Shown in pieces: positions 4,728 through 64,000 of a stretch of 64,000 nt of DNA. Where the stretch lies: NCBI GenBank assembly GCA_002269645.1, contig NIVC01000176.1, forward strand, positions 310,001 to 374,000, read 5' to 3'. Position numbers and translations under genes: made by a program. Numbering within the stretch: position 1 is the first letter of the stretch; each line of letters starts with the position of its first letter. This stretch comes from Macrostomum lignano. Taxonomy: Eukaryota. Below the pieces are notes generated by a model. The model was not told the origin of the DNA. It searched no databases and saw nothing but the letters and a program-made list of their open reading frames with translations.

Positions 4728-4759
<32 letters not shown>

Positions 4760-11158: not shown

Positions 11159-11175
11159 TTCGCTCCTTCTCCTTC

Positions 11176-12562: not shown

Positions 12563-12566
<4 letters not shown>
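11176..12566. repeat. 273-bp tandem repeat, five copies
   Basis: Identical ORFs recur at 11238, 11511, 11784, 12057 and 12330. Each unit ends ...CTCGCTATCTACTATCTAT, and the last runs into (TATC)n. Confidence 0.97.
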
Positions 12567-12645
<79 letters not shown>

Positions 12646-16762: not shown

Positions 16763-17689
16763 ATTCGGTTGACTGATGTGAAGTGTGCATGAACGAACTG
16801 AAAATTCGTCTCTCTCCCATCCACCCCGCCCGCCCCGCCGCGGCCTCGGCTCGGCCAAGCGAAAATAATCAGCTCGGCCGCTGGCCCCATCAAATCTGCA
16901 ACCGCGGCGCCCGAGACCCCCCACCTGCAAAAGAAAAAGGGAGGGAGAAAACGTTGAAACGCCGACTTATAGATGATGGAGCGAGAGAGCGGAGCGAAGA
17001 CGGTTTCCCTTTCTATCCTTTGTGTGTACGCATGTAGTGTCTGTTTTGCCGCCAAATGCATGCGGAGGTATATAAAAGGGTGTGTGAGGGGGGGCTTTAT
17101 CCCATCACACGATTCAGTGAACATGTTTGCGTGCCAATCGATTAGGTAGAGGAAGCTGAGGTTGCAGGTCCCACGCCATGTGATGTCGCTTCCTTTATAG
17201 CAGCTGGCCAACAGTCAACCAGTCAGTGTTATTTGTCTCTACATTTATACAAATGATCGGTCAGTCCACGCGACCGCGAGCGCGCGGCCATAGACTATAT
17301 GAAGGCCACTGGCCATAGACAGTTTCTTTCCTAAGTAATTTGTACCCTGTAATTAAATTATCGCCCCTAGAGTTGCAGTTTATCCCCAATGTCACGCACA
17401 GGCCTATGCCAGGGTGCATGCTGAGTTAGGCTTTACCTTGAGTTGTTGTGGAGTAAAACCGAGCTGGACCCAGAGACTAAATTATTCAGCTGATCTGCTA
17501 AGATAATTGTCTAACTATTTACTTTATAAGGAAATTGCTTTGTTTAACACTAATCAAAGGGGATGGGACATTGTTTATTTCTATCCAAAGTTACTTTTTC
17601 GTGTTCAACGCCATTAGATTTTGGATATTTTGGTGTCAAGAGTGTCAGAAGAAAACTTGGGATAATTGGTGCCTAGGTAAGTCTGTAGT

Positions 17690-25372: not shown

Positions 25373-25734
25373 GGAGTTCTCTCAAGACTCTCCATTGCTG
25401 CTCTCCACTAATACTTGAAGTATTTTACACAAGCCAAACTTCTTTTCATTCCCTTTAGTATTCTCTTTTCTCTCGATTGTACTTTTCTCTCCAAAGCAGT
25501 TCAGCTTTTTCTCCTAGCAACAAAGACAGGCGGCAGCTTTAATTTCAGACATCAAACGACGCTCTTTAATGCGAAATCCTCTCTAAAAATAACAGGCATA
25601 CTTTTTCTCCCGTCCAAAGGTAATCCCTTTGAAAAGTATCATTGCGGAACAGTGCTTTTGAATGGCTATGGTTGAAATTGGAATTTTACCTCAAAAAGTG
25701 AAAGTGCAGAAACTTTTAGATCATTCGATTTATT

Positions 25735-28700: not shown

Positions 28701-31700
28701 TCAGGAACTGATGGATTAATGCTCAGGAACTGAAGGGATTAATGCTCAGGAACTGATGGGATTAATGCTCAGGAACTGATAGGATTAATGCTCAGGAACT
28801 GATAGGATTAATGCTCAGGAACTGATAGGATTAATGCTCAGGAACTGATGGGATTAATGCTCAGGAACTGATAGGATTAATGTTTGGGAACTGAAGGATT
28901 AATGCTCAGGAACTGAAGGATTAATGCTCAGGAACTGATGGGATTAATGCTCAGGAACTGAAGGATTAATGCTCAGGAACTGATGGATTAATGCTCAGGA
29001 ACTGATAGGATTAATGCTCAGGAACTAATGGATTAATGCTCAGGAACTGATGGATTAATGCTCAGGAACTGATTGGATTAATGCTCAGGAACTGATGGAT
29101 TAATGCTCAGGAACTGATGGGATTAATGCTCAGGAACTGATGGATTAATGCTCAGGAACTGATAGGATTAATGCTCAGGAACTGAAGGATTAATGCTCAG
29201 GAACTGAAGGATTAATGCTCAGGAACTGATGGATTAATGCTCAGGAACTGAAGGATTAATGCTCAGGAACTGATGGATTAATGCTCAGGAACTGATAGGA
29301 TTAATGCTCAGGAACTGATGGATTAATGCTCAGGAACTGATGGGATTAATGCTCAGGAACTGATGGATTAATGCTCAGGAACTGATGGGATTAATGCTCA
29401 GGAACTGATGGATTAATGCTCAGGAACTGATGGGATTAATGCTCAGGAACTGATAGGATTAATGCTCAGGAACTGATAGGATTAATGCTCAGGAACTGAT
29501 AGGATTAATGCTCAGGAACTGATAGGATTAATGCTCAGGAACTGATAGGATTAATGCTCAGGAACTGATGGATTAATGCTCAGGAACTGAAGGATTAATG
29601 CTCAGGAACTGATGGATTAATGCTCAGGAACTGATAGGATTAATGCTCAGGAACTGATGGATTAATGCTCAGGAACTGATAGGATTAATGCTCAGGAACT
29701 GATAGGATTAATGCTCAGGAACTGATGGATTAATGCTCAGGAACTGAAGGATTAATGCTCAGGAACTGATAGGATTAATGCTCAGGAACTGATAGGATTA
29801 ATGCTCAGGAACTGATAGGATTAATGCTCAGGAACTGATGGATTAATGCTCAGGAACTGATAGGATTAATGCTCAGGAACTGATGGATTAATGCTCAGGA
29901 ACTGATGGGATTAATGCTCAGGAACTGATAGGATTAATGCTCAGGAACTGAAGGATTAATGCTCAGGAACTGATGGATTAATGCTCAGGAACTGATAGGA
30001 TTAATGCTCAGGAACTGATAGGATTAATGCTCAGGAACTGATAGGATTAATGCTCAGGAACTGATGGATTAATGCTCAGGAACTGATAGGATTAATGCTC
30101 AGGAACTGAAGGATTAATGCTCAGGAACTGAAGGATTAATGCTCAGGAACTGATGGATTAATGCTCAGGAACTGAAGGATTAATGCTCAGGAACTGATAG
30201 GATTAATGCTCAGGAACTGATAGGATTAATGCTCAGGAACTGAATGGATTAATGCTCAGGAACTGATAGGATTAATGCTCAGGAACTGATGGATTAATGC
30301 TCAGGAACTGAAGGGATTAATGCTCAGGAACTGATGGGATTAATGCTCAGGAACTGATAGGATTAATGCTCAGGAACTGATAGGATTAATGCTCAGGAAC
30401 TGATAGGATTAATGCTCAGGAACTGATGGGATTAATGCTCAGGAACTGATAGGATTAATGCTCAGGAACTGAAGGATTAATGCTCAGGAACTGAAGGATT
30501 AATGCTCAGGAACTGATGGATTAATGCTCAGGAACTGAAGGATTAATGCTCAGGAACTGATGGATTAATGCTCAGGAACTGAAGGATTAATGCTCAGGAA
30601 CTGATGGATTAATGCTCAGGAACTGATGGATTAATGCTCAGGAACTGATAGGATTAATGCTCAGGAACTGATAGGATTAATGCTCAGGAACTGATAGGAT
30701 TAATGCTCAGGAACTGATGGGATTAATGCTCAGGAACTGAAGGGATTAATGCTCAGGAACTGATAGGATTAATGCTCAGGAACTGATAGGATTAATGCTC
30801 AGGAACTGATAGGATTAATGCTCAGGAACTGATAGGATTAATGCTCAGGAACTGATGGGATTAATGCTCAGGAACTGATAGGATTAATGCTCAGGAACTG
30901 ATGGATTAATGCTCAGGAACTGAAGGGATTAATGCTCAGGAACTGATGGGATTAATGCTCAGGAACTGATAGGATTAATGCTCAGGAACTGATAGGATTA
31001 ATGCTCAGGAACTGATGGATTAATGCTCAGGAACTGATGGATTAATGCTCAGGAACTGATAGGATTAATGCTCAGGAACTGAAGGATTAATGCTCAGGAA
31101 CTGAAGGATTAATGCTCAGGAACTGATGGATTAATGCTCAGGAACTGAAGGATTAATGCTCAGGAACTGATGGATTAATGCTCAGGAACTGATAGGATTA
31201 ATGCTCAGGAACTGAATGGATTAATGCTCAGGAACTGATGGATTAATGCTCAGGAACTGATAGGATTAATGCTCAGGAACTGATGGATTAATGCTCAGGA
31301 ACTGAAGGGATTAATGCTCAGGAACTGATGGGATTAATGCTCAGGAACTGATAGGATTAATGCTCAGGAACTGATGGATTAATGCTCAGGAACTGATAGG
31401 ATTAATGCTCAGGAACTGATAGGATTAATGCTCAGGAACTGATAGGATTAATGCTCAGGAACTGATGGATTAATGCTCAGGAACTGAAGGATTAATGCTC
31501 AGGAACTGATGGATTAATGCTCAGGAACTGATAGGATTAATGCTCAGGAACTGATGGATTAATGCTCAGGAACTGATAGGATTAATGCTCAGGAACTGAT
31601 AGGATTAATGCTCAGGAACTGATGGGATTAATGCTCAGGAACTGATAGGATTAATGCTCAGGAACTGATAGGATTAATGCTCAGGAACTGATAGGATTAA

Positions 31701-34700
31701 TGCTCAGGAACTGATAGGATTAATGCTCAGGAACTGATGGGATTAATGCTCAGGAACTGATAGGATTAATGCTCAGGAACTGATGGATTAATGCTCAGGA
31801 ACTGATGGATTAATGCTCAGGAACTGATGGATTAATGCTCAGGAACTGAAGGATTAATGCTCAGGAACTGATGGATTAATGCTCAGGAACTGATAGGATT
31901 AATGCTCAGGAACTGATAGGATTAATGCTCAGGAACTGATAGGATTAATGCTCAGGAACTGATGGATTAATGCTCAGGAACTGATAGGATTAATGCTCAG
32001 GAACTGATGGATTAATGCTCAGGAACTGAAGGATTAATGCTCAGGAACTGATGGATTAATGCTCAGGAACTGAAGGATTAATGCTCAGGAACTGATAGGA
32101 TTAATGCTCAGGAACTGATAGGATTAATGCTCAGGAACTGATAGGATTAATGCTCAGGAACTGATGGATTAATGCTCAGGAACTGATAGGATTAATGCTC
32201 AGGAACTGATGGATTAATGCTCAGGAACTGATGGGATTAATGCTCAGGAACTGATGGATTAATGCTCAGGAACTGATGGGATTAATGCTCAGGAACTGAT
32301 AGGATTAATGCTCAGGAACTGATGGATTAATGCTCAGGAACTGATGGATTAATGCTCAGGAACTGATAGGATTAATGCTCAGGAACTGATGGATTAATGC
32401 TCAGGAACTGATGGATTAATGCTCAGGAACTGATGGATTAATGCTCAGGAACTGAAGGATTAATGCTCAGGAACTGATGGATTAATGCTCAGGAACTGAT
32501 GGATTAATGCTCAGGAACTGATGGATTAATGCTCAGGAACTGATAGGATTAATGCTCAGGAACTGATGGATTAATGCTCAGGAACTGATGGATTAATGCT
32601 CAGGAACTGATGGATTAATGCTCAGGAACTGAAGGATTAATGCTCAGGAACTGATGGATTAATGCTCAGGAACTGAAGGATTAATGCTCAGGAACTGATG
32701 GATTAATGCTCAGGAACTGATAGGATTAATGCTCAGGAACTGATGGATTAATGCTCAGGAACTGAAGGATTAATGCTCAGGAACTGATGGATTAATGCTC
32801 AGGAACTGATAGGATTAATGCTCAGGAACTGATGGATTAATGCTCAGGAACTGATGGATTAATGCTCAGGAACTGATGGATTAATGCTCAGGAACTGATG
32901 GATTAATGCTCAGGAACTGATAGGATTAATGCTCAGGAACTGATGGATTAATGCTCAGGAACTGATAGGATTAATGCTCAGGAACTGATGGATTAATGCT
33001 CAGGAACTGATAGGATTAATGCTCAGGAACTGATGGATTAATGCTCAGGAACTGATAGGATTAATGCTCAGGAACTGATGGATTAATGCTCAGGAACTGA
33101 TGGATTAATGCTCAGGAACTGATGGATTAATGCTCAGGAACTGATAGGATTAATGCTCAGGAACTGATGGATTAATGCTCAGGAACTGATAGGATTAATG
33201 CTCAGGAACTGATAGGATTAATGCTCAGGAACTGATAGGATTAATGCTCAGGAACTGATAGGATTAATGCTCAGGAACTGATGGATTAATGCTCAGGAAC
33301 TGATAGGATTAATGCTCAGGAACTGATGGATTAATGCTCAGGAACTGATAGGATTAATGCTCAGGAACTGATGGATTAATGCTCAGGAACTGATAGGATT
33401 AATGCTCAGGAACTGATGGATTAATGCTCAGGAACTGATGGATTAATGCTCAGGAACTGATAGGATTAATGCTCAGGAACTGATAGGATTAATGCTCAGG
33501 AACTGAAGGATTAATGCTCAGGAACTGATGGATTAATGCTCAGGAACTGATAGGATTAATGCTCAGGAACTGATAGGATTAATGCTCAGGAACTGATGGA
33601 TTAATGCTCAGGAACTGATAGGATTAATGCTCAGGAACTGATGGATTAATGCTCAGGAACTGATGGATTAATGCTCAGGAACTGATAGGATTAATGCTCA
33701 GGAACTGATAGGATTAATGCTCAGGAACTGATGGATTAATGCTCAGGAACTGATGGATTAATGCTCAGGAACTGATAGGATTAATGCTCAGGAACTGATG
33801 GATTAATGCTCAGGAACTGATAGGATTAATGCTCAGGAACTGATGGATTAATGCTCAGGAACTGATAGGATTAATGCTCAGGAACTGATGGATTAATGCT
33901 CAGGAACTGATAGGATTAATGCTCAGGAACTGATGGATTAATGCTCAGGAACTGATGGATTAATGCTCAGGAACTGATGGATTAATGCTCAGGAACTGAT
34001 GGATTAATGCTCAGGAACTGATAGGATTAATGCTCAGGAACTGATGGATTAATGCTCAGGAACTGATGGATTAATGCTCAGGAACTGATGGATTAATGCT
34101 CAGGAACTGATGGATTAATGCTCAGGAACTGATGGATTAATGCTCAGGAACTGATGGATTAATGCTCAGGAACTGATGGATTAATGCTCAGGAACTGATA
34201 GGATTAATGCTCAGGAACTGATGGATTAATGCTCAGGAACTGATGGATTAATGCTCAGGAACTGATAGGATTAATGCTCAGGAACTGATGGATTAATGCT
34301 CAGGAACTGATGGATTAATGCTCAGGAACTGATGGATTAATGCTCAGGAACTGATAGGATTAATGCTCAGGAACTGATGGATTAATGCTCAGGAACTGAT
34401 GGATTAATGCTCAGGAACTGATAGGATTAATGCTCAGGAACTGATGGATTAATGCTCAGGAACTGATAGGATTAATGCTCAGGAACTGAAGGATTAATGC
34501 TCAGGAACTGATAGGATTAATGCTCAGGAACTGATAGGATTAATGCTCAGGAACTGATAGGATTAATGCTCAGGAACTGATGGATTAATGCTCAGGAACT
34601 GATAGGATTAATGCTCAGGAACTGATGGATTAATGCTCAGGAACTGATGGATTAATGCTCAGGAACTGATGGATTAATGCTCAGGAACTGATAGGATTAA

Positions 34701-37700
34701 TGCTCAGGAACTGATGGATTAATGCTCAGGAACTGATAGGATTAATGCTCAGGAACTGATAGGATTAATGCTCAGGAACTGATAGGATTAATGCTCAGGA
34801 ACTGATAGGATTAATGCTCAGGAACTGATAGGATTAATGCTCAGGAACTGATAGGATTAATGCTCAGGAACTGATGGATTAATGCTCAGGAACTGATAGG
34901 ATTAATGCTCAGGAACTGATGGATTAATGCTCAGGAACTGATAGGATTAATGCTCAGGAACTGATGGATTAATGCTCAGGAACTGATAGGATTAATGCTC
35001 AGGAACTGATAGGATTAATGCTCAGGAACTGATAGGATTAATGCTCAGGAACTGATAGGATTAATGCTCAGGAACTGATGGATTAATGCTCAGGAACTGA
35101 TAGGATTAATGCTCAGGAACTGATGGATTAATGCTCAGGAACTGATGGATTAATGCTCAGGAACTGATAGGATTAATGCTCAGGAACTGATGGATTAATG
35201 CTCAGGAACTGATGGGATTAATGCTCAGGAACTGATGGATTAATGCTCAGGAACTGATAGGATTAATGCTCAGGAACTGATAGGATTAATGCTCAGGAAC
35301 TGATAGGATTAATGCTCAGGAACTGATAGGATTAATGCTCAGGAACTGATAGGATTAATGCTCAGGAACTGATGGATTAATGCTCAGGAACTGATAGGAT
35401 TAATGCTCAGGAACTGATGGATTAATGCTCAGGAACTGAAGGATTAATGCTCAGGAACTGATAGGATTAATGCTCAGGAACTGAAGGATTAATGCTCAGG
35501 AACTGATAGGATTAATGCTCAGGAACTGATAGGATTAATGCTCAGGAACTGATGGATTAATGCTCAGGAACTGAAGGATTAATGCTCAGGAACTGATGGA
35601 TTAATGCTCAGGAACTGATGGATTAATGCTCAGGAACTGATAGGATTAATGCTCAGGAACTGATGGATTAATGCTCAGGAACTGATGGATTAATGCTCAG
35701 GAACTGATGGATTAATGCTCAGGAACTGATGGATTAATGCTCAGGAACTGATGGATTAATGCTCAGGAACTGATGGGATTAATGCTCAGGAACTGATAGG
35801 ATTAATGCTCAGGAACTGATGGATTAATGCTCAGGAACTGATAGGATTAATGCTCAGGAACTGATGGATTAATGCTCAGGAACTGATAGGATTAATGCTC
35901 AGGAACTGATGGATTAATGCTCAGGAACTGATAGGATTAATGCTCAGGAACTGATGGGATTAATGCTCAGGAACTGATAGGATTAATGCTCAGGAACTGA
36001 TGGATTAATGCTCAGGAACTGATAGGATTAATGCTCAGGAACTGATGGATTAATGCTCAGGAACTGATAGGATTAATGCTCAGGAACTGATAGGATTAAT
36101 GCTCAGGAACTGATAGGATTAATGCTCAGGAACTGATAGGATTAATGCTCAGGAACTGATAGGATTAATGCTCAGGAACTGATGGATTAATGCTCAGGAA
36201 CTGATAGGATTAATGCTCAGGAACTGATGGATTAATGCTCAGGAACTGATAGGATTAATGCTCAGGAACTGATGGATTAATGCTCAGGAACTGATAGGAT
36301 TAATGCTCAGGAACTGATGGATTAATGCTCAGGAACTGATAGGATTAATGCTCAGGAACTGATAGGATTAATGCTCAGGAACTGATAGGATTAATGCTCA
36401 GGAACTGATGGATTAATGCTCAGGAACTGATAGGATTAATGCTCAGGAACTGATGGATTAATGCTCAGGAACTGATAGGATTAATGCTCAGGAACTGATG
36501 GATTAATGCTCAGGAACTGAAGGATTAATGCTCAGGAACTGATAGGATTAATGCTCAGGAACTGAAGGATTAATGCTCAGGAACTGATGGATTAATGCTC
36601 AGGAACTGATAGGATTAATGCTCAGGAACTGATGGATTAATGCTCAGGAACTGATAGGGATTAATGCTCAGGAACTGATGGATTAATGCTCAGGAACTGA
36701 TAGGATTAATGCTCAGGAACTGATAGGATTAATGCTCAGGAACTGATGGATTAATGCTCAGGAACTGATGGATTAATGCTCAGGAACTGATGGATTAATG
36801 CTCAGGAACTGATGGATTAATGCTCAGGAACTGATGGATTAATGCTCAGGAACTGAAGGATTAATGCTCAGGAACTGATGGGATTAATGCTCAGGAACTG
36901 ATGGATTAATGCTCAGGAACTGATGGATTAATGCTCAGGAACTGATAGGATTAATGCTCAGGAACTGATAGGATTAATGCTCAGGAACTGATGGATTAAT
37001 GCTCAGGAACTGATGGATTAATGCTCAGGAACTGGATTAATGCTCAGGAACTGATGGATTAATGCTCAGGAACTGAAGGATTAATGCTCAGGAACTGATG
37101 GATTAATGCTCAGGAACTGATGGATTAATGCTCAGGAACTGATGGATTAATGCTCAGGAACTGATAGGATTAATGCTCAGGAACTGATAGGATTAATGCT
37201 CAGGAACTGATGGATTAATGCTCAGGAACTGATAGGATTAATGCTCAGGAACTGATGGATTAATGCTCAGGAACTGATGGATTAATGCTCAGGAACTGAT
37301 GGATTAATGCTCAGGAACTGATGGATTAATGCTCAGGAACTGATGGATTAATGCTCAGGAACTGATAGGATTAATGCTCAGGAACTGATAGGATTAATGC
37401 TCAGGAACTGAAGGATTAATGCTCAGGAACTGATAGGATTAATGCTCAGGAACTGATAGGATTAATGCTCAGGAACTGATAGGATTAATGCTCAGGAACT
37501 GATGGATTAATGCTCAGGAACTGATAGGATTAATGCTCAGGAACTGATGGATTAATGCTCAGGAACTGATGGATTAATGCTCAGGAACTGATAGGATTAA
37601 TGCTCAGGAACTGATAGGATTAATGCTCAGGAACTGATGGATTAATGCTCAGGAACTGATAGGATTAATGCTCAGGAACTGATAGGATTAATGCTCAGGA

Positions 37701-39788
37701 ACTGATAGGATTAATGCTCAGGAACTGATAGGATTAATGCTCGGGAACTGATAGGATTAATGCTCAGGAACTGATGGATTAATGCTCAGGAACTGATGGA
37801 TTAATGCTCAGGAACTGATGGGATTAATGCTCAGGAACTGATGGATTAATGCTCAGGAACTGATAGGATTAATGCTCAGGAACTGATGGATTAATGCTCA
37901 GGAACTGATAGGATTAATGCTCAGGAACTGATAGGATTAATGCTCAGGAACTGATGGGATTAATGCTCAGGAACTGATAGGATTAATGCTCAGGAACTGA
38001 TAGGATTAATGCTCAGGAACTGATAGGATTAATGCTCAGGAACTGATGGGATTAATGCTCAGGAACTGATAGGATTAATGCTCAGGAACTGATAGGATTA
38101 ATGCTCAGGAACTGATAGGATTAATGCTCAGGAACTGATGGGATTAATGCTCAGGAACTGATAGGATTAATGCTCAGGAACTGATAGGATTAATGCTCAG
38201 GAACTGATAGGATTAATGCTCAGGAACTGATAGGATTAATGCTCAGGAACTGATAGGATTAATGCTCAGGAACTGATAGGATTAATGCTCAGGAACTGAT
38301 AGGATTAATGCTCAGGAACTGATGGGATTAATGCTCAGGAACTGAAGGATTAATGCTCAGGAACTGATAGGATTAATGCTCAGGAACTGATAGGATTAAT
38401 GCTCAGGAACTGATGGATTAATGCTCAGGAACTGATAGGATTAATGCTCAGGAACTGATAGGATTAATGCTCAGGAACTGAAGGATTAATGCTCAGGAAC
38501 TGATAGGATTAATGCTCAGGAACTGATAGGATTAATGCTCAGGAACTGATAGGATTAATGCTCAGGAACTGATGGATTAATGCTCAGGAACTGATAGGAT
38601 TAATGCTCAGGAACTGATAGGATTAATGCTCAGGAACTGATGGATTAATGCTCAGGAACTGATGGATTAATGCTCAGGAACTGATGGATTAATGCTCAGG
38701 AACTGATGGATTAATGCTCAGGAACTGATGGATTAATGCTCAGGAACTGATGGATTAATGCTCAGGAACTGATGGGATTAATGCTCAGGAACTGATGGAT
38801 TAATGCTCAGGAACTGATGGATTAATGCTCAGGAACTGATGGGATTAATGCTCAGGAACTGATAGGATTAATGCTCAGGAACTGATAGGATTAATGCTCA
38901 GGAACTGATAGGATTAATGCTCAGGAACTGATAGGATTAATGCTCAGGAACTGATAGGATTAATGCTCAGGAACTGATGGATTAATGCTCAGGAACTGAT
39001 AGGATTAATGCTCAGGAACTGATAGGATTAATGCTCAGGAACTGATAGGATTAATGCTCAGGAACTGATGGATTAATGCTCAGGAACTGATAGGATTAAT
39101 GCTCAGGAACTGATAGGATTAATGCTCAGGAACTGATAGGATTAATGCTCAGGAACTGATAGGATTAATGCTCAGGAACTGATAGGATTAATGCTCAGGA
39201 ACTGATAGGATTAATGCTCAGGAACTGATAGGATTAATGCTCAGGAACTGATAGGATTAATGCTCAGGAACTGATAGGATTAATGCTCAGGAACTGATAG
39301 GATTAATGCTCAGGAACTGATGGATTAATGCTCAGGAACTGAAGGATTAATGCTCAGGAACTGAAGGATTAATGCTCAGGAACTGAAGGATTAATGCTCA
39401 GGAACTGATGGGATTAATGCTCAGGAACTGGATTAATGCTCAGGAACTGGATTAATGCTCAGGAACTGATGGATTAATGCTCAGGAACTGATGGATTAAT
39501 GCTCAGGAACTGATAGGATTAATGCTCAGGAACTGATAGGATTAATGCTCAGGAACTGATAGGATTAATGCTCAGGAACTGATAGGATTAATGCTCAGGA
39601 ACTGATGGGATTAATGCTCAGGAACTGATGGGATTAATGCTCAGGAACTGATGGGATTAATGCTCAGGAACTGATAGGATTAATGCTCAGGAACTGATGG
39701 GATTAATGCTCAGGAACTGATGGGATTAATGCTCAGGAACTGGTTAGATTAATGCTCAGGAACTGATGGGATTAATGCTCAGGAGCTG
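25735..39788. repeat. 14-kb satellite of 22/23-bp units, core GGATTAATGCTCAGGAACT plus spacer GAT/GATA/GATG/GAA/GAAG
   Basis: Roughly 600+ units by length. More substitutions in the left 3 kb. Confidence 0.99.
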
Positions 39789-40145
39789 AGTTTTTTTCCA
39801 ACGTATCGGAGGTTGCTAAAAGCTTCCTTAAAAAAGCAAATTCGGTGATGAGGAGAGAGGCTGCAGGTGCTTTTAGATATTCCAGCTTCACCTTGATGGG
39901 GCTAATGGCCCGCTCTAGTGAAAGCGCTAAGCCGAAGGTGTGGCTTTGAGTCTATTCATCTAGAGAGATTTAACAGATGCCGTTTGTGGTGGCAGCTGGC
40001 TTGAATGAAGAAAATGCATAATTGAGCTCGCTGTGTTGAGCCCCCCCCCCCCCGGCTCAAATCGCTCTTTGCCTTCGAATGAATTGGCAGAGTTGCTGAG
40101 AATTTCCCATTTCCAATTCAGAAAGATTGAGACAGGGAGTGAGAG

Positions 40146-43110: not shown

Positions 43111-43906
43111 TCGGTTCCACTCAGATGAGTGACATAAAATTATTACTGATGTCATCACAAAAAATCATTTCAAATGCAAAGCCCTCGAGCAACAATTTTA
43201 GCGGTTTTGCTTGCAGACAAAAACTAAACTGAACAAAAGAATTTTTTTGCTATTTCTTTTTTGATAAAACTGAAATGAAAGTTATAGTTTAAAATTTTGA
43301 GTTCGCTTTCTCTGCCCTTCTCCCCCGCATGAAGGACTTAACTATTGTGCTCAAAGTCATGAGTATACATGTATTTAGGTTGCAGGCCCTGTGAGTAAGG
43401 TGAAAAAAAGTGAAAAACGCAAGTCATCCGAAAGATGTTTCAGCTGCAATGGTCCACATGTTGGCCTGTAATTCTTTGCTTGGTACTGACAGTACTATGC
43501 ATAAAACCACTACTGCGAAAAAAAATTCTCACCCAATCCGTGAATTGGGGAGCTGCGGTGTTTTGGTATTGTCGGCCTACATCAAACGAAAAACAGGTTG
43601 AGAAGAAAATGAAAAGTACATTCAAAATTATTTAACAGAAACTACAGTAATATAACTTATTCAGAGCCGTAGTTTAAACCATAAGATGGCTTTTTCAAGG
43701 AAAATATTTGGTGGTCCCATTGTCAGGGTGGAAAAGAAAAGGTTCGTCAGCCTTCATATTGTGCGTCTGGGTGCTAGCTGAGTCCTAAAAACAGGGGGTA
43801 AACAGCAGTAAAACCTACGCATATCGACAGCAGATACGTAGATAGTGAAATAGCAAAAAGCTTCTGCCAAATTCGAGTCTTTGTTAGTAGTACTTTGAGA
43901 CCATTT

Positions 43907-44272
43907 GTGCTCATAACGCCATCCAAATGCTGGTCCGCTCTCTCCTTGTCCGCACCCTTGAGGTAGATGGCCGCATCGCTGAGAAAGAAATGATTCATGA
44001 TGCGACCCCGAGATCGGTCAGGTGTGCCAGGTGTTTGTCTGTCCTGCTCTCGGCTCTTCTCCACACAGTCGAGCAGCATCTGCAGCGACTGTCTCGTGAG
44101 ACTCACGAGGTTCTCCTTCTTCCACTGCTCGACCGGCGTCTCGTCCAGCATTCGGAAGGTGATGGTCTTCACGTGGTAGGACTTCAAGCCTTGCTGATTG
44201 AAGCCATCCTTGTGTCAGATGACCTTCTTGACCAGGTATTTGAGTGTGACTGATTGGGAAATATACAGCTTT
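43907..44272 (-). pseudogene. Truncated paralogous fragment of cGLR exon 3
   Basis: 43907-44250 aligns without gaps and at high identity to 53531-53874. It continues into sequence matching intron 54239-54260. In-frame TGT>TGA stop at 44217-44215. Confidence 0.85.
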
Positions 44273-52698: not shown

Positions 52699-54170
52699 TT
52701 ACTGCCGAACAGCCCTTAAAAACGGCCATTTTTCCAGCAGTCTCTTCTTCAGCCCATCAGGAAGATCTGCTTCCATCATCTTCAGCTTCTTTATTATTTC
52801 CTTGAGCAGCTCCGGATTCGAAGCATAAAAAGCGGCAACCTGCAGCTCCTGCTCATCCGAGTTCTCTCTCTCCGCCACATCCCGGATCCAGTCCTGAGCG
52901 CTCGCTTCTCCATCAGTCCGCAGCTCCAGCCGCAGAGCCCACAGCAGAGCGTCAAAGTTCATGTAGAAATAGACAGCACTGCCTGACAACCGGAGGGGAA
53001 AGCACTCCCTCAGAGCTCCTGTCAAGAATTCGAGTTTCGGTTGCTGGTCGAAAAAAAAGCAGAACTTCCACGTCGAGTCGCGGCTCCTCAGATGCCGCAT
53101 CACGAACTCCACAGTCGCTTCAGTCGCAGACTTCTCACGAGACCAAGCGATGCCTCTGCTCACCGAGTGACCTGAGCACGAGCTCACGACTCTCTCTGCA
53201 GTTCCTCGGTAGCCGAACTTCAGGCAAGCCAGCGCTCTGAGAGCCTCCCGTGCTGAGAGGGCGCAGTCTGGCAGTCTGGCAATCAGCTCTGTGAGCGACT
53301 CCTGAGATCGCGGGCTGCAGTCACTGCAAGAGAGACGTACCAGACACTCTCTCACCACGTCGTAGATCTGATAGTACTCGAGAGTATTGGACTCCGTGAG
53401 TGGCATCGGACTCAGATCCGGCAGGATTTGGAACGGGTGGAAGTAGAATGTGCCTGAGTCGCTCACAGGTCTGAGACTGCCGATGAACTGCTGCAGCAGT
53501 TGGGGCAGCCGATCGATTACTGTTCTCAGTGTGCTCATGATGCCGTCCAAATGCTGGTCCGCTCTCTCCTTGTCCGCACCCTTGAGGTAGATGGCCGCAT
53601 CGCTGAGAAAGAAATGATTCATGATGCGACCCCGAGATCGGTCAGGTGTGTCAGGTGTTTGTCTGTCCTGCTCTCGGCTCTTCTCCACACAGCCGAGCAA
53701 CATCTGCAGCGACTGTCTCGTGAGACTCACGAGGTTCTCCTTCTTCCACTGCTCGACCGGCGTCTCGTCCACCATTCGAAAGGTGATGGTCTTCACGTGG
53801 TAGGACTTCAAGCCTTGCTGTTTGAAGCCATTCTTGTGACAGATGACCTTCTTGACCAGGTATTTGAGTGTGACGAACAGTTGACCTTGCAGGGTAGAGA
53901 GACTTCGCAGCATTCGGTTCTCCAGGAAGCTGGTGCTCACGCGGAGCTCTTCGCCACCTCGGTCAGGAGAGGCTGCGTGCACCACGTGGCAGGGCGATGA
54001 GGCGGAGGTGAGAACCTTCCAGAGGGCCTCCAGAACCGAATGGGGGATGTTGGAGATGCGGTTTGGCAGCAGCGGCGCGATGGGCGGGTAGCGGCAGAGA
54101 AGACTTGCGAAGACATTGTCCAGTGCTGGCCTCAGTGTGAATCCGGGTGTCGCATGAGCAGGATTGGAGG
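52699..54170 (-). CDS. ANK-cGLR exon 3: Mab-21 core and C-lobe plus about 270-aa helical C-terminal extension
   Basis: Acceptor gtttttacAG|CC is phase 1. Mab-21 motifs: LDNVFA (third catalytic Asp), [35 protein letters not shown]. Stop at 52701-52699; AATAAA on minus at about 52533-52538. Confidence 0.9.
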
Positions 54171-54830
54171 CTGTAAAAACGATTGTGTTCCAGATGAGGC
54201 AAAATACAGCTATGAGTCTGTGCAGTGATGCTTTGTACTGATTGGGCAATATGCAGCTTACCCAAACATACTAAAACTGCTCAACCAAAATGACACAAAA
54301 TTCCCTTGATGCGAACCTTTCTTACCGAAAACTGCAAAAAACTGCTGAATGCGCAATTTTTCACTGAACCCTTCATTGTGTTGCTCCACTTTTACCAATG
54401 CTACTTAAATTTGACACCAAAAATCTTGTCAAGTTTTCTTACATTCTTGCCAGAGTGGACCAACCCCAGCACACGGAACTCAAGGACATGGTTGAACCAT
54501 TTTTTGTGAACCTTCTGAAACAAGAACTTCTACTGTCAATTTGCACTTTCGATACTAAATAATGTTTTATCACTCATCAAATATGTTCCGTGTTTTGTTA
54601 ACTTTCCGGGTTTTCCCCTTTACTTAGTTTTAGACGGCAATTGCCATCGCTTGTCATTTTACACATAATCTACCAATGCTTTACACACAAAAACACAGGA
54701 GAAGCAGAAATTCGAAAAAGCAGAAGACAAAAAGCAAACGTCTGCACTGCCAGAATCTTAAGTCTTAAGCAATCACTAACAGAACTAACAGAACTAACAG
54801 ACAATCTTCACTCCCCGAGAGAGAACTCAC

Positions 54831-55174
54831 CGAATCCTGAGCACTGAATGTGCCCGTTCACCATCTCGTGCTGCTCCGGAGCTCCATCGCACTCGCACAG
54901 GCCTCTCTGGTGGTATTCTCGGCCGGGAATCAAATGCATCACATCAATGTCGGAATGGGCGTCAGTTCTGCCGTCCAGTGTCGTCAGGCTGTTGCCCCAG
55001 CCTTCTGAGTAGCTGCCGACCACAAAAATGTAATTGTAGTTCTTCCGACTTCTCAGAATCTGCTGCAGGGCATCGGCAGCCGCGCTCTGCAATGCGGCTC
55101 GGGATTCGGTGAAGCCTGACTGCTCCAGTGCTGAGTGCAGCTGCTCGCTCAGCTCTGAGTCGCTGGGACTGCAT
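54831..55174 (-). CDS. ANK-cGLR exon 2: spine helix and nucleotidyltransferase signature (VGSYSEG...SDID)
   Basis: Acceptor ctcacatcttAG|A TGC is phase 2. Translation contains FVVGSYSEGWGN...DAHSDIDVM. Donor TTC G|GTGAGT is phase 1. Confidence 0.9.
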
Positions 55175-55688
55175 CTAAGATGTGAGTTGTTGGTGAAAAA
55201 CGTGCACTTCAAGAAGGGTTAACTGACTAATTTGAGTAGCATAGGGCAGCACTCCCGAGCAGTGCATGAATTGATTGAAGGCAGTTGAACCTTTAAGTTT
55301 AGTTTAGCGCAAATGTTTGCATGTTTTGTTCCTGAAAAAATGTCTACTTTTAAATGCCTTCCTATGTCGAGTGTCTGTTGTATGGTTGGCAGGTAGGAAA
55401 TGGACTGATTTAGCGATGAGGATGAGACTTAAGATTTTGGTCCTGGAGGTGAAGTGGGGCAGGCTAAACCAAGTCATGTTAGTTGCAAGCTATGAAAACC
55501 CTTAGGCCCAGACACTGGGTTAACAAGCCGATATATATTGTCGAGAACACCAATATGGTGTGAGCAGTGTACGCTGAAGTACACTAAAGTACGGAGACAA
55601 TAGAATAGCGATAATAGTGCACACAAGCCTCACACATCAGGGTAGGGCAGGCTGGGGGTTGGGTAGGGCATCCGGAGGTGGGGTGGGA

Positions 55689-55789
55689 GTAGTATTGGTA
55701 CGAGTGAGGATAACCATACACACTCCCTTCGGTCGTGACGTTCTCTCATTCACTTGATGTTCATCCTCAATATATACCAATAGTACTAC
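55689..55789. mobile_element. Mini inverted-repeat element, copy A (ANK-cGLR intron 1)
   Basis: Termini GTAGTATTGGTA...TACCAATA(GT)CTAC. The interior is the reverse complement of the interior of copy B. Confidence 0.5.
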
Positions 55790-56776
55790 AAAGTATCTTT
55801 AAAAATTAGGGTTGTGTTAAAAACCTTAAGTTCCCATTAGGTAACATGTGGCACCACCTTTGGGCAGCCCAAAGTGTGTGGCAGATGTGGCAGTGGCAGT
55901 TTCAAACTATTCTGATTTTGTATATAACCCTATTTTCTAGGTAGTGATCTCAGCTATCCTTAAAAACTTTAAATTCCAATCATAAAATAAAAAGTGCTTT
56001 TTGATGTGTCAAACATTTTTAGGGTCAAAAATGGCAGAAAATGTGGGACTTATCAAAACAGCTAGAGTGTAATCGATGAGGTATTTATAAAGTGTCGAGA
56101 CATATATCCTCTAGAAATTGAAGATATTTTAATTTTTCCTCTTAAAAATGAGTTTGGAATAAAATTAAACACGACAAAATTCTAGAAATTATCAAATTTT
56201 ACTAGAAATATCGTCAAAGAGCCGCTATGCAGACATCAACTTCCCCAATAGAAAAAGGGGAACTTACAATCCAAAATGTACAGCATCCATTGTTCTCGGA
56301 AAAAGGGAACTTGCCATGTGTGTACTCTCAAAGAGTCTATTGTACTCGGAAAGGGGAGCTAAGTTGCCTATACGTGGATCCAACAGTACTGAAAATCTCT
56401 TGCCCCATCTAGTTGCTATTGACAACCATTTCATTCTCTCCACAGTGTCTATAATACAACCGAGAAAAGCTATATTTATAGTGACATATCGTGGAGTTCC
56501 CTCACGAATATTAGCGATTGAGTCTTGCTTCAGTATTTTTCTCGCTCATTTTTTATGTCAGAATTTCTTCAAATCATTCATTGCCTTGTCTTGAAGATAC
56601 TTGAGACTGTTATGTTGATCCTAGAAGCGAGCCTTTTCAACAATATCTTGAATAGCCTTGTTTAATTGCGAGGCTATACTGTATCTGCTGCTCTTCTTCC
56701 ATTCTTATCTTCGCATCAAAATGTTCTTTGCTGCTGATGCTGTTTTACCTATTGCATCAGCTCCAATATTTTTTTT

Positions 56777-56866
56777 GTAGTATTGGTATATATCAAGTGA
56801 GTGAATGAGAGAACGTCACAACCGAAGTGAGTGTGTATGGTCATCCTCAATATATACCAATACTAC
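56777..56866. mobile_element. Mini inverted-repeat element, copy B (inverted relative to A)
   Basis: Termini GTAGTATTGGTA...TACCAATACTAC. The interior gagagaacgtcacaaccgaagtgagtgtgtatgg is the reverse complement of the copy A interior. Confidence 0.5.
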
Positions 56867-57032
56867 TTGCGTGCTGTTCCAACTTACAGAACTGCCTCTC
56901 ATTAATACTATTATACAATCTATGCTCGTACTTCGAACCCGTAAAAACTAATTAAACAGTTATTGAGAATCAAAAACGAAAATACATGACAAACGAAAAA
57001 TGAAGAAAACAAATCTAATGACTGAAAATTAC

Positions 57033-59275
57033 CCAAATAGTGACTCTTTCGGTGGCTCTTCCACAGCAGATGTGTTTTCAGCGACTTCTTGATAATGAAT
57101 ATGTTCAACCTTGGCGTCAGCTTGTGCTTTGATGAGTGACCTCACAACTTGGTGGTGACCCTTTGCTGATGCAATGTAGAGAGGTGAGCAGCCATCGACT
57201 TGTTGAAGATTGACGTCAGCTTGTACTTTGATGAGTGAGCTCAAAACTTGGTCGTGACCATTCTGTGATGCAATGTAGAGAGGTGAGCAGCCATCGACTT
57301 GTTGAAGATTGACGTCAGCTTGTGCTTTGATGAGTGAGCTCACAACTTGGTCGTGACCATTCTGTGATGCAATGTAGAGAGGTGAGCAGCCATTTAATTC
57401 TTGAAGATTGACGTCAGCTTGTGCTTTGATAAGTGAGCTCACAACTTTGTGGTGGCCATTCTGTGATGCCATGTAGAGAGGTGAATAGCCATTGATACTT
57501 TGAAGATTGACGTCAGATTGTGCTTTGATGAGTGAGCTCACAACTTGGTGGTGACCATTCTGTGATGCAATGTAGAGAGGTGAGCAGCCATCGACTTCTT
57601 GAAGATTGACGTCAGCTTGTGCTTTGATGAGTGAGCTCACAACTTGGTGGTAACCATTCTGTGATGCAATGTAGAGAGGCGAGCAGCCATCGACTTCTTG
57701 AAGATTGATGTCAGCTTGTGCTTTGATGAGTGAGCTCACAACTTGGTGGTGACCATTCTGTGATGCAATGTAGAGAGGTGAGCAGCCATCGACTTGTTGA
57801 AGATTGACGTCAGCTTGTACTTTGATGAGTGAGCTCACAACTTGGTGGTGACCATTCTGTGATGCAATGTAGAGAGGTGAGCAGCCATTTAATTCTTGAA
57901 GATTGACGTCAGCTTGTGCTTTGATAAGTGAGCTCACAACTTGGTGGTGACCATAATGTGATGCAATGTAGAGAGGTGAGCAGCCATCGACTTCTTGAAG
58001 ATTGACGTCAGCTTGTGCTTTGATGAGTGAGCTCACAACTTGGTCGTGACCATTCTGTGATGCAATGTAGAGAGGTGAGCAGCCATCGACTTGTTGAAGA
58101 TTGACGTCAGCTTGTGCTTTGATGAGTGAGCTCACAACTTGGTCGTGACCAAAGTGTGATGCAGCGTAGAGAGGTGACTCGCCAGTGTTTCGTTGAAGAT
58201 TGACGTCAGCTTGTGCTTTGATGAGTGAGCTCACAACTTGGTCGTGACCAAAGTGTGATGCAGCGTAGAGAGGTGAGCAGCCATCGACTTGTTGAAGATT
58301 GACGTCAGCTTGTACTTTGATGAGTGAGCTCACAACTTGGTGGTGACCATTCTGTGATGCAATGTAGAGAGGTGAGCAGCCATCGACTTGTTGAAGATTG
58401 ACGTCAGCTTGTGCTTTGATGAGTGAGCTCACAACTTGGTCGTGACCATTCTGTGATGCAATGTAGAGAGGTGAACCGCCTTGGATTTGTTGAAGATTGA
58501 CGTCAGCTTGTGCTTTGATGAGTGAGCTCACAACTTGGTCGTGACCATTCTGTGATGCAATGTAGAGAGGTGACGAGCCAGTGTTTCGTTGAAGATTGAC
58601 GTCAGCTTGTGCTTTGATGAGTGAGCTCACAACTTGGTCGTGACCAAAGTGTGATGCAGCGTAGAGAGGTGACTCGCCAGTGTTTCGTTGAAGATTGACG
58701 TCAGCTTGTGCTTTGATGAGTGAGCTCACAACTTTGTCGTGACCATTCTGTGATGCAATGTAGAGAGGTGACGAGCCAGTGTTTCGTTGAAGATTGACGT
58801 CAGCTTGTGCTTTGATGAGTGAGCTCACAACTTTGTCGTGACCATTCTGTGATGCAATGTAGAGAGGTGACGAGCCAGTGTTTCGTTGAAGATTGACGTC
58901 AGCTTGTGCTTTGATGAGTGAGCAAACAACTTGGTGGTGACCCTTCGCTGATGCAATGTACAGAGGTGAGCAGCCATCGCTTCGTTGAAGATTGACGTCA
59001 ACTCTGGCTTGAATGAACATTTCGATAATTTTGACGTTTCCCATTTCACATGCAAAGTGAAGCGGTGTGAATTTTATCCCAGACATGCTGCAGAGCTTAT
59101 CAACGTTAGAAGCCATCTGCAGGTAGAGTGAAATTTTTGTTTCATTTTCGAACACAATGGCTGCCAGGATCTCCCGCTCAGTGCCATCAAGGTCCTCGCT
59201 TCGGCCTGCGGGCCTGCCGAAGGCCTGCATCAGAACTGCTGCAATGGCTGTCAGGATTCTCCAAAGAGCTTCCAT
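57033..59275 (-). CDS. ANK-cGLR exon 1: N-terminal helix, 20 ankyrin repeats (33 aa), linker
   Basis: True ATG at 59275. One divergent repeat (FTPLHFACEMGN) and 19 near-identical xSPLYxASxxGHxQVVSSLIKAQADVNLQxxxG units. The ORF ends TTT GG|GTAATT, a phase-2 donor overlapping its stop codon. Confidence 0.9.
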
Positions 59276-60495: not shown

Positions 60496-60764
60496 GGCCT
60501 GGGGCAGCAACACAGCCCCAGGAATTGTCGTACTTCTGAACAAATTCAAACAAAGGAATGGAATTGCAGCTTAAAAGCAAAGCAAAGGCATGCGGTTAAA
60601 ATTTCGGTTATTGAAATCGCCTGTCGGATACAAGCGCGCCAATGCTGTACGCAGGCACACGCTCACACAGGGTGTACAGCGGCGGCCCTGACTTTATAAT
60701 CGTCAGGCATGCACACTATCTAGCATTCATGGGTGTTCGATAGCACCAGATCTAGGAAGGAAGA

Positions 60765-63700
60765 TCTAGAAGCTGCAGACAGAGGAGGGTGGAAGGTCTA
60801 GAAGCGGCAGATAGAGGAGGGTGGAAGGTCTAGAAGCGGGAGATAGAGGAGGGTGGAAGGTCTAGAAGCTGCAGACAGAGGAGGGTGGAAGGTCTAGAAG
60901 CGGCAGATAGAGGAGGTGGAAGGTCTAGAAGCGGCAGATAGAGGAGGTGGAAGGTCTAGAAGCGGCAGATAAAGGAGGGAGGAAGGTCTAGAAGCGGCAG
61001 ATAGAGGAGGGTGGAAGGTCTAGAAGCAGCAGAAAAAGGAGGGAGGAAGGTCTAGAAGCGGCAGATAGAGGAGGGTGGAAGGTCTAGAAGCAGCAGATAG
61101 AGGAGGGAGGAAGGTCTAGAAGCGGCAGATAGAGAAGGTGGAAGGTCTAGAAGCGGCAGATAGAGGAGGTGGAAGGTCTAGAAGCGGCAGATAGAGGAGG
61201 TGGAAGGTCTAGAAGCGGCAGATAGAGGAGGTGGAAGGTCTAGAAGCGGCAGATAAAGGAGGGAGGAAGGTCTAGAAGCGGCAGATAGAGGAGGGTGGAA
61301 GGTCTAGAAGCAGCAGATAGAGGAGGGAGGAAGGTCTAGAAGCGGCAGATAGAGGAGGGAGGAAGGTCTAGAAGCGGCAGATAGAGGAGGGAGGAAGGTC
61401 TAGAAGCGGCAGATAGAGGAGGTGGAAGGTCTAGAAGCGGCAGATAGAGGAGAGAGGAAGGTCTAGAAGCGGCAGATAGAGGAGGAGGAAGGTCTAGAAG
61501 CGGCAGATAGAGGAGGGAGGAAGGTCTAGAAGCGGCAGATAGAGGAGGGAGGAAGGTCTAGAAGCGGCAGATAGAGGAGGTGGAAGGTCTAGAAGCGGCA
61601 GATAGAGGAAGAAGGAAGGTCTAGAAGCGGCAGATAGAGGAGGGTGGAAGGTCTAGAAGCGGCAGATAGAGGAGGTGGAAGGTCTAGAAGCGGCAGATAG
61701 AGGAGGGAGGAAGGTCTAGAGGCGGCAGATAGAGGAGGGAGGAAGGTCTAGAAGCGGCAGATAGAGGAGGGAGGAAGGTCTAGAAGCGGCAGATAGAGGA
61801 GGGAGGAAGGTCTAGAGGCGGCAGATAGAGGAGGGAGGAAGGTCTAGAAGCGGCAGATAGAGGAGGGTGGAAGGTCTAGAAGCGGCAGATAGAGGAGGGA
61901 GGAAGGTCTTGAAGCGGCAGATAGAGGAGGGTGGAAGGTCTAGAAGCGGCAGATAGAGGAGGCGGAAGGTCTAGAAGCGGCAGATAGAGGAAGAAGGAAG
62001 GTCTAGAAGCGGCAGATAGAGAAGGGTGGAAGGTCTAGAAGCGGCAGATAGAGGAGGTGGAAGGTCTAGAAGCGGCAGATAGAGGAGGGAGGAAGGTCTA
62101 GAGGCGGCAGATAGAGGAGGGAGGAAGGTCTAGAAGCGGCAGATAGAGGAGGGAGGAAGGTCTAGAAGCGGCAGATAGAGGAGGGAGGAAGGTCTAGAGG
62201 CGGCAGATAGAGGAGGGAGGAAGGTCTAGAAGCGGCAGATAGAGGAGGGTGGAAGGTCTAGAAGCAGCAGATAGAGGAGGGAGGAAGGTCTAGAAGCGGC
62301 AGATAGAGAAGGTGGAAGGTCTAGAAGCGGCTGATAGAGGAGGTGGAAGGTCTAGAAGCGGCAGATAGAGGAGGTGGAAGGTCTAGAAGCGGCAGATAGA
62401 GGAGGTGGAAGGTCTAGAAGCGGCAGATAAAGGAGGGTGGAAGGTCTAGAAGCAGCAGATAGAGGAGGGAGGAAGGTCTAGAAGCGGCAGATAGAGGAGG
62501 GAGGAAGGTCTAGAAGCGGCAGATAGAGGAGGGAGGAAGGTCTAGAAGCGGCAGATAGAGGAGGGAGGAAGGTCTAGAAGCGGCAGATAGAGGAGAGAGG
62601 AAGGTCTAGAAGCGGCAGATAGAGGAGGTGGAAGGTCTAGAAGCGGCAGATAGAGGAAGAAGGAAGGTCTAGAAGCGGCAGATAGAGGAGGGTGGAAGGT
62701 CTAGAAGCGGCAGATAGAGGAGGTGGAAGGTCTAGAAGCGGCAGATAGAGGAGGGAGGAAGGTCTAGAGGCGGCAGATAGAGGAGGGAGGAAGGTCTAGA
62801 AGCGGCAGATAGAGGAGGGAGGAAGGTCTAGAAGCGGCAGATAGAGGAGGGAGGAAGGTCTAGAGGCGGCAGATAGAGGAGGGAGGAAGGTCTAGAAGCG
62901 GCAGATAGAGGAGGGTGGAAGGTCTAGAAGCAGCAGATAGAGGAGGGAGGAAGGTCTAGAAGCGGCAGATAGAGAAGGTGGAAGGTCTAGAAGCGGCAGA
63001 TAGAGGAGGTGGAAGGTCTAGAAGCGGCAGATAGAGGAGGTGGAAGGTCTAGAAGCGGCAGATAGAGGAGGTGGAAGGTCTAGAAGCGGCAGATAAAGGA
63101 GGGAGGAAGGTCTAGAAGCGGCAGATAGAGGAGGGTGGAAGGTCTAGAAGCGGCAGATAGAGGAGGGAGGAAGGTCTAGAAGCGGCAGATAGAGGAGGGA
63201 GGAAGGTCTAGAAGCGGCAGATAAAGGAGGGAGGAAGGTCTAGAAGCGGCAGATAGAGGAGGTGGAAGGTCTAGAAGCGGCAGATAGAGGAGGGAGGAAG
63301 GTCTAGAAGCGGCAGATAGAGGAGGGAGGAAGGTCTAGAAGCGGCAGATAGAGGAGGGGGAAGGTCTAGAAGCGGCAGATAGAGGAGGTGGAAGGTCTAG
63401 AAGCGGCAGATAGAGGAGGTGGAAGGTCTAGAAGCGGCAGATAGAGGAGGTGGAAGGTCTAGAAGCGGCAGAAAAAGGAGGGAGGAAGGTCTAGAAGCGG
63501 CAGATAGAGGAGGGAGGAAGGTCTAGAAGCAGCAGATAGAGGAGGGAGGAAGGTCTAGAAGCGGCAGATAGAGAAGGTGGAAGGTCTAGAAGCGGCAGAT
63601 AGAGGAGGTGGAAGGTCTAGAAGCGGCAGATAGAGGAGGTGGAAGGTCTAGAAGCGGCAGATAGAGGAGGTGGAAGGTCTAGAAGCGGCAGATAAAGGAG

Positions 63701-64000
63701 GGTGGAAGGTCTAGAAGCAGCAGATAGAGGAGGGAGGAAGGTCTAGAAGCGGCAGATAGAGGAGGGAGGAAGGTCTAGAAGCGGCAGATAGAGGAGGGAG
63801 GAAGGTCTAGAAGCGGCAGATAGAGGAGGGAGGAAGGTCTAGAAGCTGCAGATATAGGAGAGAGGAAGGTCTAGAATCGGCAGATAGAGGAGGGAGGAAG
63901 GTCTAGAAGCGGCAGATAGAGGAGGGAGGAAGGTCTAGAAGCGGCAGATAGAGGAGAGAGGAAGGTCTAGAAGCGGCAGATAGAGGAGAGAGGAAGGTCT
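60765..64000. repeat. 31/32-bp purine-rich minisatellite (GGAAGGTCTAGAAGCGGCAGATAGAGGAGG(G)(T/A))n, running off the window end
   Basis: About 100 units, nearly all containing TCTAGA. Confidence 0.98.

Follow-up and report, generated by a model that had tools for sequence, protein, structure and literature searches.

The closest described relatives of the gene presented here are cGAS-like receptors (cGLRs) that combine the nucleotidyltransferase with repeat modules. In the survey of Li et al. 2023 (Cell; preprint 10.1101/2023.02.22.529553, PMC9980059) some cGLRs carry tetratricopeptide or ankyrin modules and ANK is given as an architecture class (Fig. 1C). Their Table S2 includes the Macrostomum lignano proteins PAA67649.1, PAA58690.1, PAA68676.1, PAA86972.1, PAA45980.1 and PAA68216.1 with Ank_2, and according to Table S3 five enzyme-core constructs of this flatworm (nos. 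89-93) entered the biochemical screen (10.1101/2023.02.22.529553). Here, we describe a further locus of this kind, located in a 64,000-nt stretch of the M. lignano assembly GCA_002269645.1 (contig NIVC01000176.1, positions 310,001 to 374,000 of the forward strand), in the following called the window, with all positions counted from its first letter. Judged from its sequence, the locus is very probably one spliced gene that encodes a fusion of ankyrin repeats and a cGAS-like enzyme. Both the ANK-cGLR architecture and its presence in Macrostomum are already published (Li et al. 2023), and because of this the window adds a locus and detail and not a discovery. New are one more paralogue with its splice structure, the way in which its ankyrin repeats vary and the observation of a C-terminal domain.

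The transcript was rebuilt from the sequence. Three minus-strand exons (59275-57033, 55174-54831 and 54170-52699) can be joined in frame over GT/AG borders, and the resulting 2243 + 344 + 1472 = 4059 nt are completely open, with no frameshift, no internal stop and one terminal stop. They encode 1352 aa, a length which, like the number of repeats, holds only if the 19 near-identical 99-nt units have been assembled correctly. Coordinates, phases and arithmetic of the original prediction, which had been made from the letters alone, could all be reproduced. The ankyrin open reading frame (ORF) has its own TAA at 57031-57029, overlapping the donor of exon 1. The enzyme frame has no ATG upstream of its Gly-Ser and Asp-x-Asp residues: its listed ORF starts with TTG, its first in-frame Met is that of ‘DIDVMHL’, and the ATG at 55174 opens a separate 70-aa frame (ORF 54962-55174) that is out of frame with the enzyme, just as had been noted before. 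An alternative in-frame donor about 80 nt upstream of that of exon 1 (AAG/GTTGAA, the slash marking the exon border) is of phase 0 and for this reason incompatible with the phase-2 acceptor. Annotation based on ORFs splits this 1352-aa receptor into three pieces.

The joining of these exons is supported by their paralogues. A homology search with the product of exons 2 and 3 as query returned 33 homologues of the enzyme part, all of them from M. lignano, the best being 88% identical and most having N-terminal Ank domains. The nearest gene model with ankyrin repeats, P0002, is 87% identical and reads ‘...EKPPKEPEFE-CSLSDSELSEQ’ at the junction where the window has ‘...EEPPKESLFG-CSPSDSELSEQ’; its linker, ...SSALEKPPKEPEFE, is homologous to the linker of the window, KVEHIHYQEVAENTSAVEEPPKESLFG. 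Four paralogue genomic loci of the same assembly, 37-58% identical, were compared, and each of them begins with an ankyrin exon, which is followed, after a phase-2 intron at the same residue position, by an exon of ~345 nt and, after a phase-1 intron, by a last exon. Since this exon layout and the intron phases recur in four loci, the joining goes beyond chance. The second introns of the paralogues (80-730 nt) sit at the same position as intron 2 of the window. Their first introns have 105, 432, 501 and ~586 nt, and in the locus with 105 nt only, no separate promoter or first exon fits between ankyrin and enzyme exons. In all four loci the ankyrin frame meets a stop directly past the donor (G/GTGA or G/GTAA); as any phase-2 consensus donor yields such a stop, the TAA at 57031-57029 does not speak for a gene of its own. 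Mlig_3_7 was annotated by genome-guided assembly of the transcriptome (PMC8629364). Its model P0007 contains two gaps without GT/AG borders inside the ankyrin array, probably the mark of a repeat-collapsed transcript assembly, and therefore the ankyrin-enzyme junction probably has RNA support in the paralogues.

As far as homology allows to judge, the gene is part of a large ANK-cGLR expansion so far seen only in Macrostomum, where the ANK-cGLRs fall into at least 92 clusters at 50% identity. Among the family proteins retrieved, ankyrin repeats lie upstream of the enzyme in 74 of the 78 that have more than 100 residues before it. The original prediction had suggested a search for this architecture in order to establish novelty and family size: a large family was indeed found, but novelty has to be denied, as ANK-cGLRs are already listed by Li et al. 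2023. Where a family model has no ankyrin repeats, it is in most cases a fragment lacking a starting Met. The beginning of model P0005 lies in the ORF of the out-of-frame ATG equivalent to that at 55174, so that P0005 is mis-modelled, and the models P0015 and P0034 each fuse two adjacent family genes, from which it follows that family members lie in tandem. Some public gene models of the Macrostomum ANK-cGLR family (P0005, P0015, P0034) are consequently wrong.

Past the ankyrin arm (first 748 aa) the protein continues for 604 aa. The original prediction spoke of cGLR exons; these do encode the enzyme, but also a C-terminal domain of ~270 aa that had not been separated from it. Li et al. 2023 define the cGLR motif as G[S/G] + [E/D]h[E/D] X50-90 [E/D] and, in its strict form, as h[QT]GS X8-20 [DE]h[DE]h X50-90 h[DE]h (10.1101/2023.02.22.529553). 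The window protein shows V-G53-S54, 20 residues, D75-I-D77-V, 52 residues and L-D132-N, which agrees with the former and deviates from the latter by Val for Gln/Thr before Gly-Ser and, in this copy, by Asn after D132. G53, S54, D75, D77 and D132 are invariant in 12 out of 12 aligned family members, down to ~30% identity. An AlphaFold model of the enzyme built from this 12-sequence family alignment (predicted local distance difference test, pLDDT, 86; predicted template modelling score, pTM, 0.88) was compared with the PDB by Foldseek. The top 29 matches are cGAS (E 2e-7 to 8e-6, 370-420 aligned columns, template modelling score 0.47-0.59, target-normalised, with 0.55-0.59 for the best of them), followed by MAB21L1, MB21D2, MiD51 and bacterial CD-NTases; the model thus has the predicted structural homology to cGAS/CD-NTase by which Li et al. 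also recognise cGLRs. With the family profile, mouse cGAS (3.6e-9) and 8gjy, deposited as ‘cGAS-like receptor 1’ (4.9e-5), were found in the PDB, whereas a search with the single sequence gave marginal cGAS matches only (E 0.18), significance being reached with the profile. In hhalign, residues 173-299 matched a small cGAS/cGLR alignment with 97.4% probability, and the significant sequence homology thus covers the helical bundle with its adjacent strands. Neither HMMER nor hhalign aligned the N-terminal enzyme core to cGAS/cGLR, and its assignment is a predicted one, made by motif and fold only. Junction of P0002, phases of the four paralogue loci, predicted fold and catalytic residues together speak for the earlier claim that a single gene unites an ankyrin array and a cGAS-like enzyme. 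Within the family, the enzyme residues H88, C93, H108, C140 and H176 show no or hardly any variation; comparable to the zinc thumb of cGAS, they might constitute a metal site.

The ankyrin arm is unusually regular, with 19 tandem units of 33 aa each. Tandem Repeats Finder reports 19.1 copies of a 99-nt unit (57111-59000, 92% matches), and in Pfam the first 196 aa score 103 bits with Ank PF00023 and 98 bits with PF12796. Differences among the 19 repeats are limited to the unit positions 8, 9, 10, 12, 17, 20, 21 and 24, while nearly all other codons are identical. Unit positions 9, 10, 12, 20 and 21 we take to be the standard ankyrin positions 2, 3, 5, 13 and 14. The latter form the target-binding face of ankyrin repeats, and in designed ankyrin binders they are the randomised ones. 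The pooled ratio of nonsynonymous to synonymous differences between the repeats (pN/pS) is 2.0 and, like the location of the differences, would favour a sensor arm; it is suggestive only, as the pairs of repeats entering it are not independent of each other and gene conversion, a confounding factor, is likely here. The very N-terminus of the window protein, MEALWRILTAIAAVLMQAFGR, is homologous to the start of the complete paralogue P0007, MGFLQRLFSAVAACCLRVFGR. It begins with a hydrophobic segment (mean Kyte-Doolittle value ~1.7, calculated by hand), and a similar one opens P0007 as well as the second of the two genes fused in P0034. By its composition this segment may be a membrane anchor, may mediate membrane association or may form an amphipathic helix.

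Conservation of the C-terminal domain among the paralogues extends down to 26% identity, and the domain is also present as an extension in the M. lignano constructs of Li et al. Modelled alone by AlphaFold it reached a pLDDT of 80 and a pTM of 0.81. A PDB fold search with this domain gave no significant match, the best being weak TPR-like ones (TRIF N-terminal domain, Fis1) with E >=0.45, and in Pfam the domain of the window was unmatched, with one chance-level match (E 0.075) among ten scanned paralogues.

Table 1. Features of the ankyrin-cGLR locus (positions within the window; a slash marks an exon border)
Feature	Positions	Strand	Description
Exon 1	57033..59275	minus	2243 nt; aa 1-747 + 2 nt of codon 748; start ATG 59275-59273; ends ...TTTGG/GTAATT, last base 57033, phase 2
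Intron 1	55175..57032	minus	1858 nt, phase 2, GT...AG borders
Exon 2	54831..55174	minus	344 nt; acceptor tcttAG/ before 55174 (A TGC AGT...); donor TTCG/GTGAGT at 54831, phase 1; N-terminal helices and first part of nucleotidyltransferase core
Intron 2	54171..54830	minus	660 nt, phase 1, TTCG/GTGAGT ... tttttacAG/C
Exon 3	52699..54170	minus	1472 nt including stop 52701-52699; acceptor tttttacAG/ at 54170; rest of enzyme core, Mab-21_C-like bundle, C-terminal domain
N-terminal hydrophobic segment	59219..59275	minus	aa 1-19, MEALWRILTAIAAVLMQAF; read from sequence
Ankyrin array	57113..59080	minus	one degenerate + 19 near-identical 33-aa repeats
Linker (27 aa)	57033..57112	minus	KVEHIHYQEVAENTSAVEEPPKESLFG; ends at phase-2 donor GG/GTAATT
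Gly-Ser	55017-55012	minus	exon 2, G53-S54
Asp-Ile-Asp	54951-54943	minus	exon 2, D75-I-D77
Third catalytic Asp	54120-54118	minus	exon 3, D132
Mab-21_C-like helical bundle	about 53997-53617	minus	exon 3
C-terminal domain	52702..53523	minus	274 aa, mostly helical, few strands; family-specific
Intron 1 insert	55705..56867		arms 55705-55754 / 56800-56849 (50 nt, 94% complementary); 55770-55792 / 56771-56793 (23 nt)

Several observations weigh against an intact fusion gene with a cGAS-like enzyme, and they are treated here together with the alternatives they favour. The search for Pfam domains, which had been proposed at the outset, recovered Ank as mentioned above, but the enzyme-core family PF03281 (Mab-21) gave no match and PF20266 (Mab-21_C) remained with 23.0 bits under its cut-off of 24.1, so that the window protein reaches the gathering threshold of neither. 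Of seven relatives scanned with PF20266, two pass (P0063 with 28.7 bits, P0066 with 24.6) and five stay below. An exhaustive search with the family profile found 1630 proteins at E <=1e-3, 307 at <=1e-10 and 92 at <=1e-30; six of seven strong matches looked up are from M. lignano (the seventh is P0101), and weaker matches with E 1e-15 to 1e-20, including annelid and sea anemone proteins, carry Pfam Mab-21 and Mab-21_C. Because the profile reaches true PF03281 + PF20266 proteins while the family's own Pfam scores mostly fall short, the enzyme part is, by sequence profile and predicted fold, a divergent cGAS/Mab-21 branch poorly captured by Pfam. A different difficulty is raised by the closest relative, L002 (M. 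lignano NIVC01001460.1, 9660-12146; 88% identical), which has the same exon 2 acceptor and no ankyrin ORF of >=100 aa within 10 kb upstream. Its homology to the window ends ~290 nt upstream of exon 2, and either a very long intron is present there or the ankyrin exon was lost in that copy. Such enzyme exons, together with the stop codon possessed by the ankyrin ORF, the existence of database models without ankyrin repeats and the fact that trans-splicing affects ~30% of M. lignano genes (PMC8629364), could be taken for two genes, an ankyrin-only gene that ends at the TAA and an enzyme gene with another 5' exon or a spliced leader. We consider this highly improbable. A stop right after the exon end is expected of a phase-2 GTAA or GTGA donor and is found in the paralogues as well, the enzyme frame offers no ATG before its active site, the models without ankyrin repeats are mostly non-Met fragments or, as P0005, mis-modelled, and paralogue first introns go down to 105 nt. 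The M. lignano spliced leader ends with ...GCATG (PMC8629364); joined at 55174 it yields TG+A = TGA in the enzyme frame, while its ATG falls in the 70-aa junk frame, and an enzyme with a spliced leader only, which the original prediction had named as a possible refutation, is therefore unlikely. An M. lignano spliced-leader RNA gene was not found within the 64-kb window.

The remaining objections to one spliced fusion gene concern the state of this particular copy. With GTAAT as donor and TAG as acceptor, the sites of intron 1 are below the M. lignano consensus (donor GT[G/A]AG, acceptor CAG; PMC8629364). The same intron holds an insert of ~1.16 kb with inverted repeats at its ends. This is probably a remnant of a transposon of foldback or miniature inverted-repeat (MITE) type and supplies most of the extra length of the intron compared to the 105-586 nt in paralogues. 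The ratio of nonsynonymous to synonymous substitution rates (dN/dS) against L002 is only mildly below 1 (enzyme 0.48, C-terminal domain 0.83, overall 0.64, at a dS of 0.10) and indicates, from this sequence comparison, weak constraint or fast evolution. Satellite-packed surroundings, a stray copy of a part of exon 3 that points to local rearrangement and the absence of an identical protein in an exact database look-up of the 748-aa ankyrin ORF go in the same direction, namely that the family architecture is real while this copy is decaying or poorly expressed, i.e. a young pseudogene or an inefficiently spliced gene. We hold this for rather improbable, since the 4059 nt are fully open, all invariant residues of the family including the catalytic ones are kept, start Met and N-terminus are conserved, and the raised dN/dS can equally be explained by the comparison partner or by the fast evolution of an immune gene.

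If the locus is one fusion gene, its domain order (hydrophobic N-terminus, ~20 ankyrin repeats, 27-aa linker, cGAS-like nucleotidyltransferase, ~270-aa C-terminal domain) would suit a catalytic sensor. The elongated ankyrin solenoid may bind a ligand or a partner protein via its variable concave face, ligand binding would control the attached enzyme, and the enzyme would in turn produce a nucleotide second messenger that a downstream receptor recognises. Reading frame and paralogue conservation, domain order, predicted fold and conservation of catalytic residues were observed directly or predicted here; the chain from ankyrin ligand via enzyme control to nucleotide signal is a plausible extension of them and would be the most likely mode of action. 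The original prediction had pointed to STING, which might be the receptor; in the part of Table S5 of Li et al. covered here, consulted on this point, Macrostomum is not listed (10.1101/2023.02.22.529553). One fusion gene and a catalytic sensor role taken together are at best fairly likely. The fusion could also be real without being a ligand-activated synthase, if the enzyme part were a nucleotide-binding pseudo-enzyme or scaffold, or formed a non-cyclic product, with ankyrin repeats serving localisation or scaffolding. MAB21L1 and MiD51 are also among the fold matches, the Val before Gly-Ser departs from Gln/Thr and the 20-residue spacing is at the upper limit. Furthermore, in the screen of Li et al. 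15 active enzymes are flagged by a note, but for the five M. lignano enzyme-core constructs the Note column, which labels selected active enzymes, is empty (0 of 5; 10.1101/2023.02.22.529553). Those constructs, on the other hand, were devoid of the ankyrin arm and were screened with nucleic-acid ligands only, cGAS ranks above its non-catalytic relatives in Foldseek, and the invariance of Gly-Ser, Asp-x-Asp and Asp down to ~30% identity is hard to explain without catalysis; a non-synthase role is thus possible, if still on the unlikely side.

A more far-reaching proposal, which we regard as doubtful at present, is that Macrostomum possesses a large repertoire of cytosolic receptors, based on ankyrin repeats instead of leucine-rich repeats, whose binding face is under diversifying selection and recognises non-nucleic-acid ligands (e.g., pathogen proteins), thereby switching on the attached cGAS-like enzyme, with the C-terminal domain regulating it or coupling it downstream. 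If the proposal were true, the Macrostomum family would correspond in function to NLR or VLR repertoires, with nucleotide second messengers as its signal. Owing to its variable ankyrin surface, its C-terminal domain and the lack of marked enzyme-only activity, the family is a suitable place to ask whether cGLRs sense non-nucleic-acid ligands, and it sits in a flatworm open to RNA interference and transgenesis in the laboratory.

Concerning the surroundings of the gene, an isolated 345-bp copy of a part of exon 3 (53530-53874) is found in the same orientation ~8 kb away, at 43906-44250, with 96.8% DNA and 94% protein identity; it is probably a gene fragment from a local rearrangement. The window is very rich in tandem repeats, among them a 14-kb satellite at 25736-39789 (23-nt unit CTCAGGAACTGATAGGATTAATG, ~620 copies, 95% matches) and minisatellites at 23110-25380 (51-nt unit), 17679-19441, 60754-64000 (32-nt unit) and 11172-12570 (273-nt unit, 100% matches). 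Most long spurious ORFs of the window are generated by these repeats. Poly-Gln and poly-Gly abound in the minus-strand ORF 3884-5032, and the first half of an HMG box (36 bits with Pfam HMG_box) stands at its end; the box presumably resembles an exon of a TCF/LEF (pangolin)-type transcription factor.

Compared with known systems, the in-frame splice and the four paralogue loci would place the window protein in the ANK-cGLR fusion class, i.e. ankyrin repeats and cGLR core in one polypeptide. With the ANK-cGLRs of Li et al. it shares the organism group, the position of the ankyrin repeats N-terminal to the cGLR core and the pattern GS[FY][AS]E.WG ... D.D.DV, and its enzyme part is 38% identical to PAA86972.1, their construct 89 (E 2e-71). 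It differs in being another paralogue with an unusually long and homogeneous array of 19 near-identical repeats, and for the M. lignano proteins Li et al. neither give the splice structure nor analyse the ankyrin surface or describe the C-terminal domain. With vertebrate cGAS and insect cGLR1 it has in common the bilobed nucleotidyltransferase with helical bundle, the Gly-Ser plus acidic triad and the motifs ‘SYHVKT’ and ‘LRVSTSF / WRLSFS’. In contrast to them it carries an ankyrin array and a C-terminal domain in addition, identity in structural alignments is as low as ~13-14%, and the loop between Gly-Ser and Asp-x-Asp has 20 residues instead of the 11 in the cGAS sequences compared. Mab21L1, MB21D2 and MiD49/51 have the same fold but no ankyrin repeats. 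In the family of the window protein all catalytic residues are kept. MiD51, which is not known to be catalytic, bears an N-terminal membrane anchor, and by analogy the hydrophobic N-terminus of the window protein may resemble it. For Mab21L1/2/3, Li et al. state that a functional active site is not predicted (10.1101/2023.02.22.529553). The original prediction had also heard an echo of NLR architecture. The Pfam scan of the window protein detected no NACHT or NB-ARC ATPase, there are no leucine-rich repeats, and the signalling module is a nucleotidyltransferase located C-terminal to the repeats, so this protein is not an NLR. The similarity in logic persists as an analogy with NLRs and other repeat-based sensors, namely a solenoid with variable surface that is joined to a signalling module in a lineage-expanded family.

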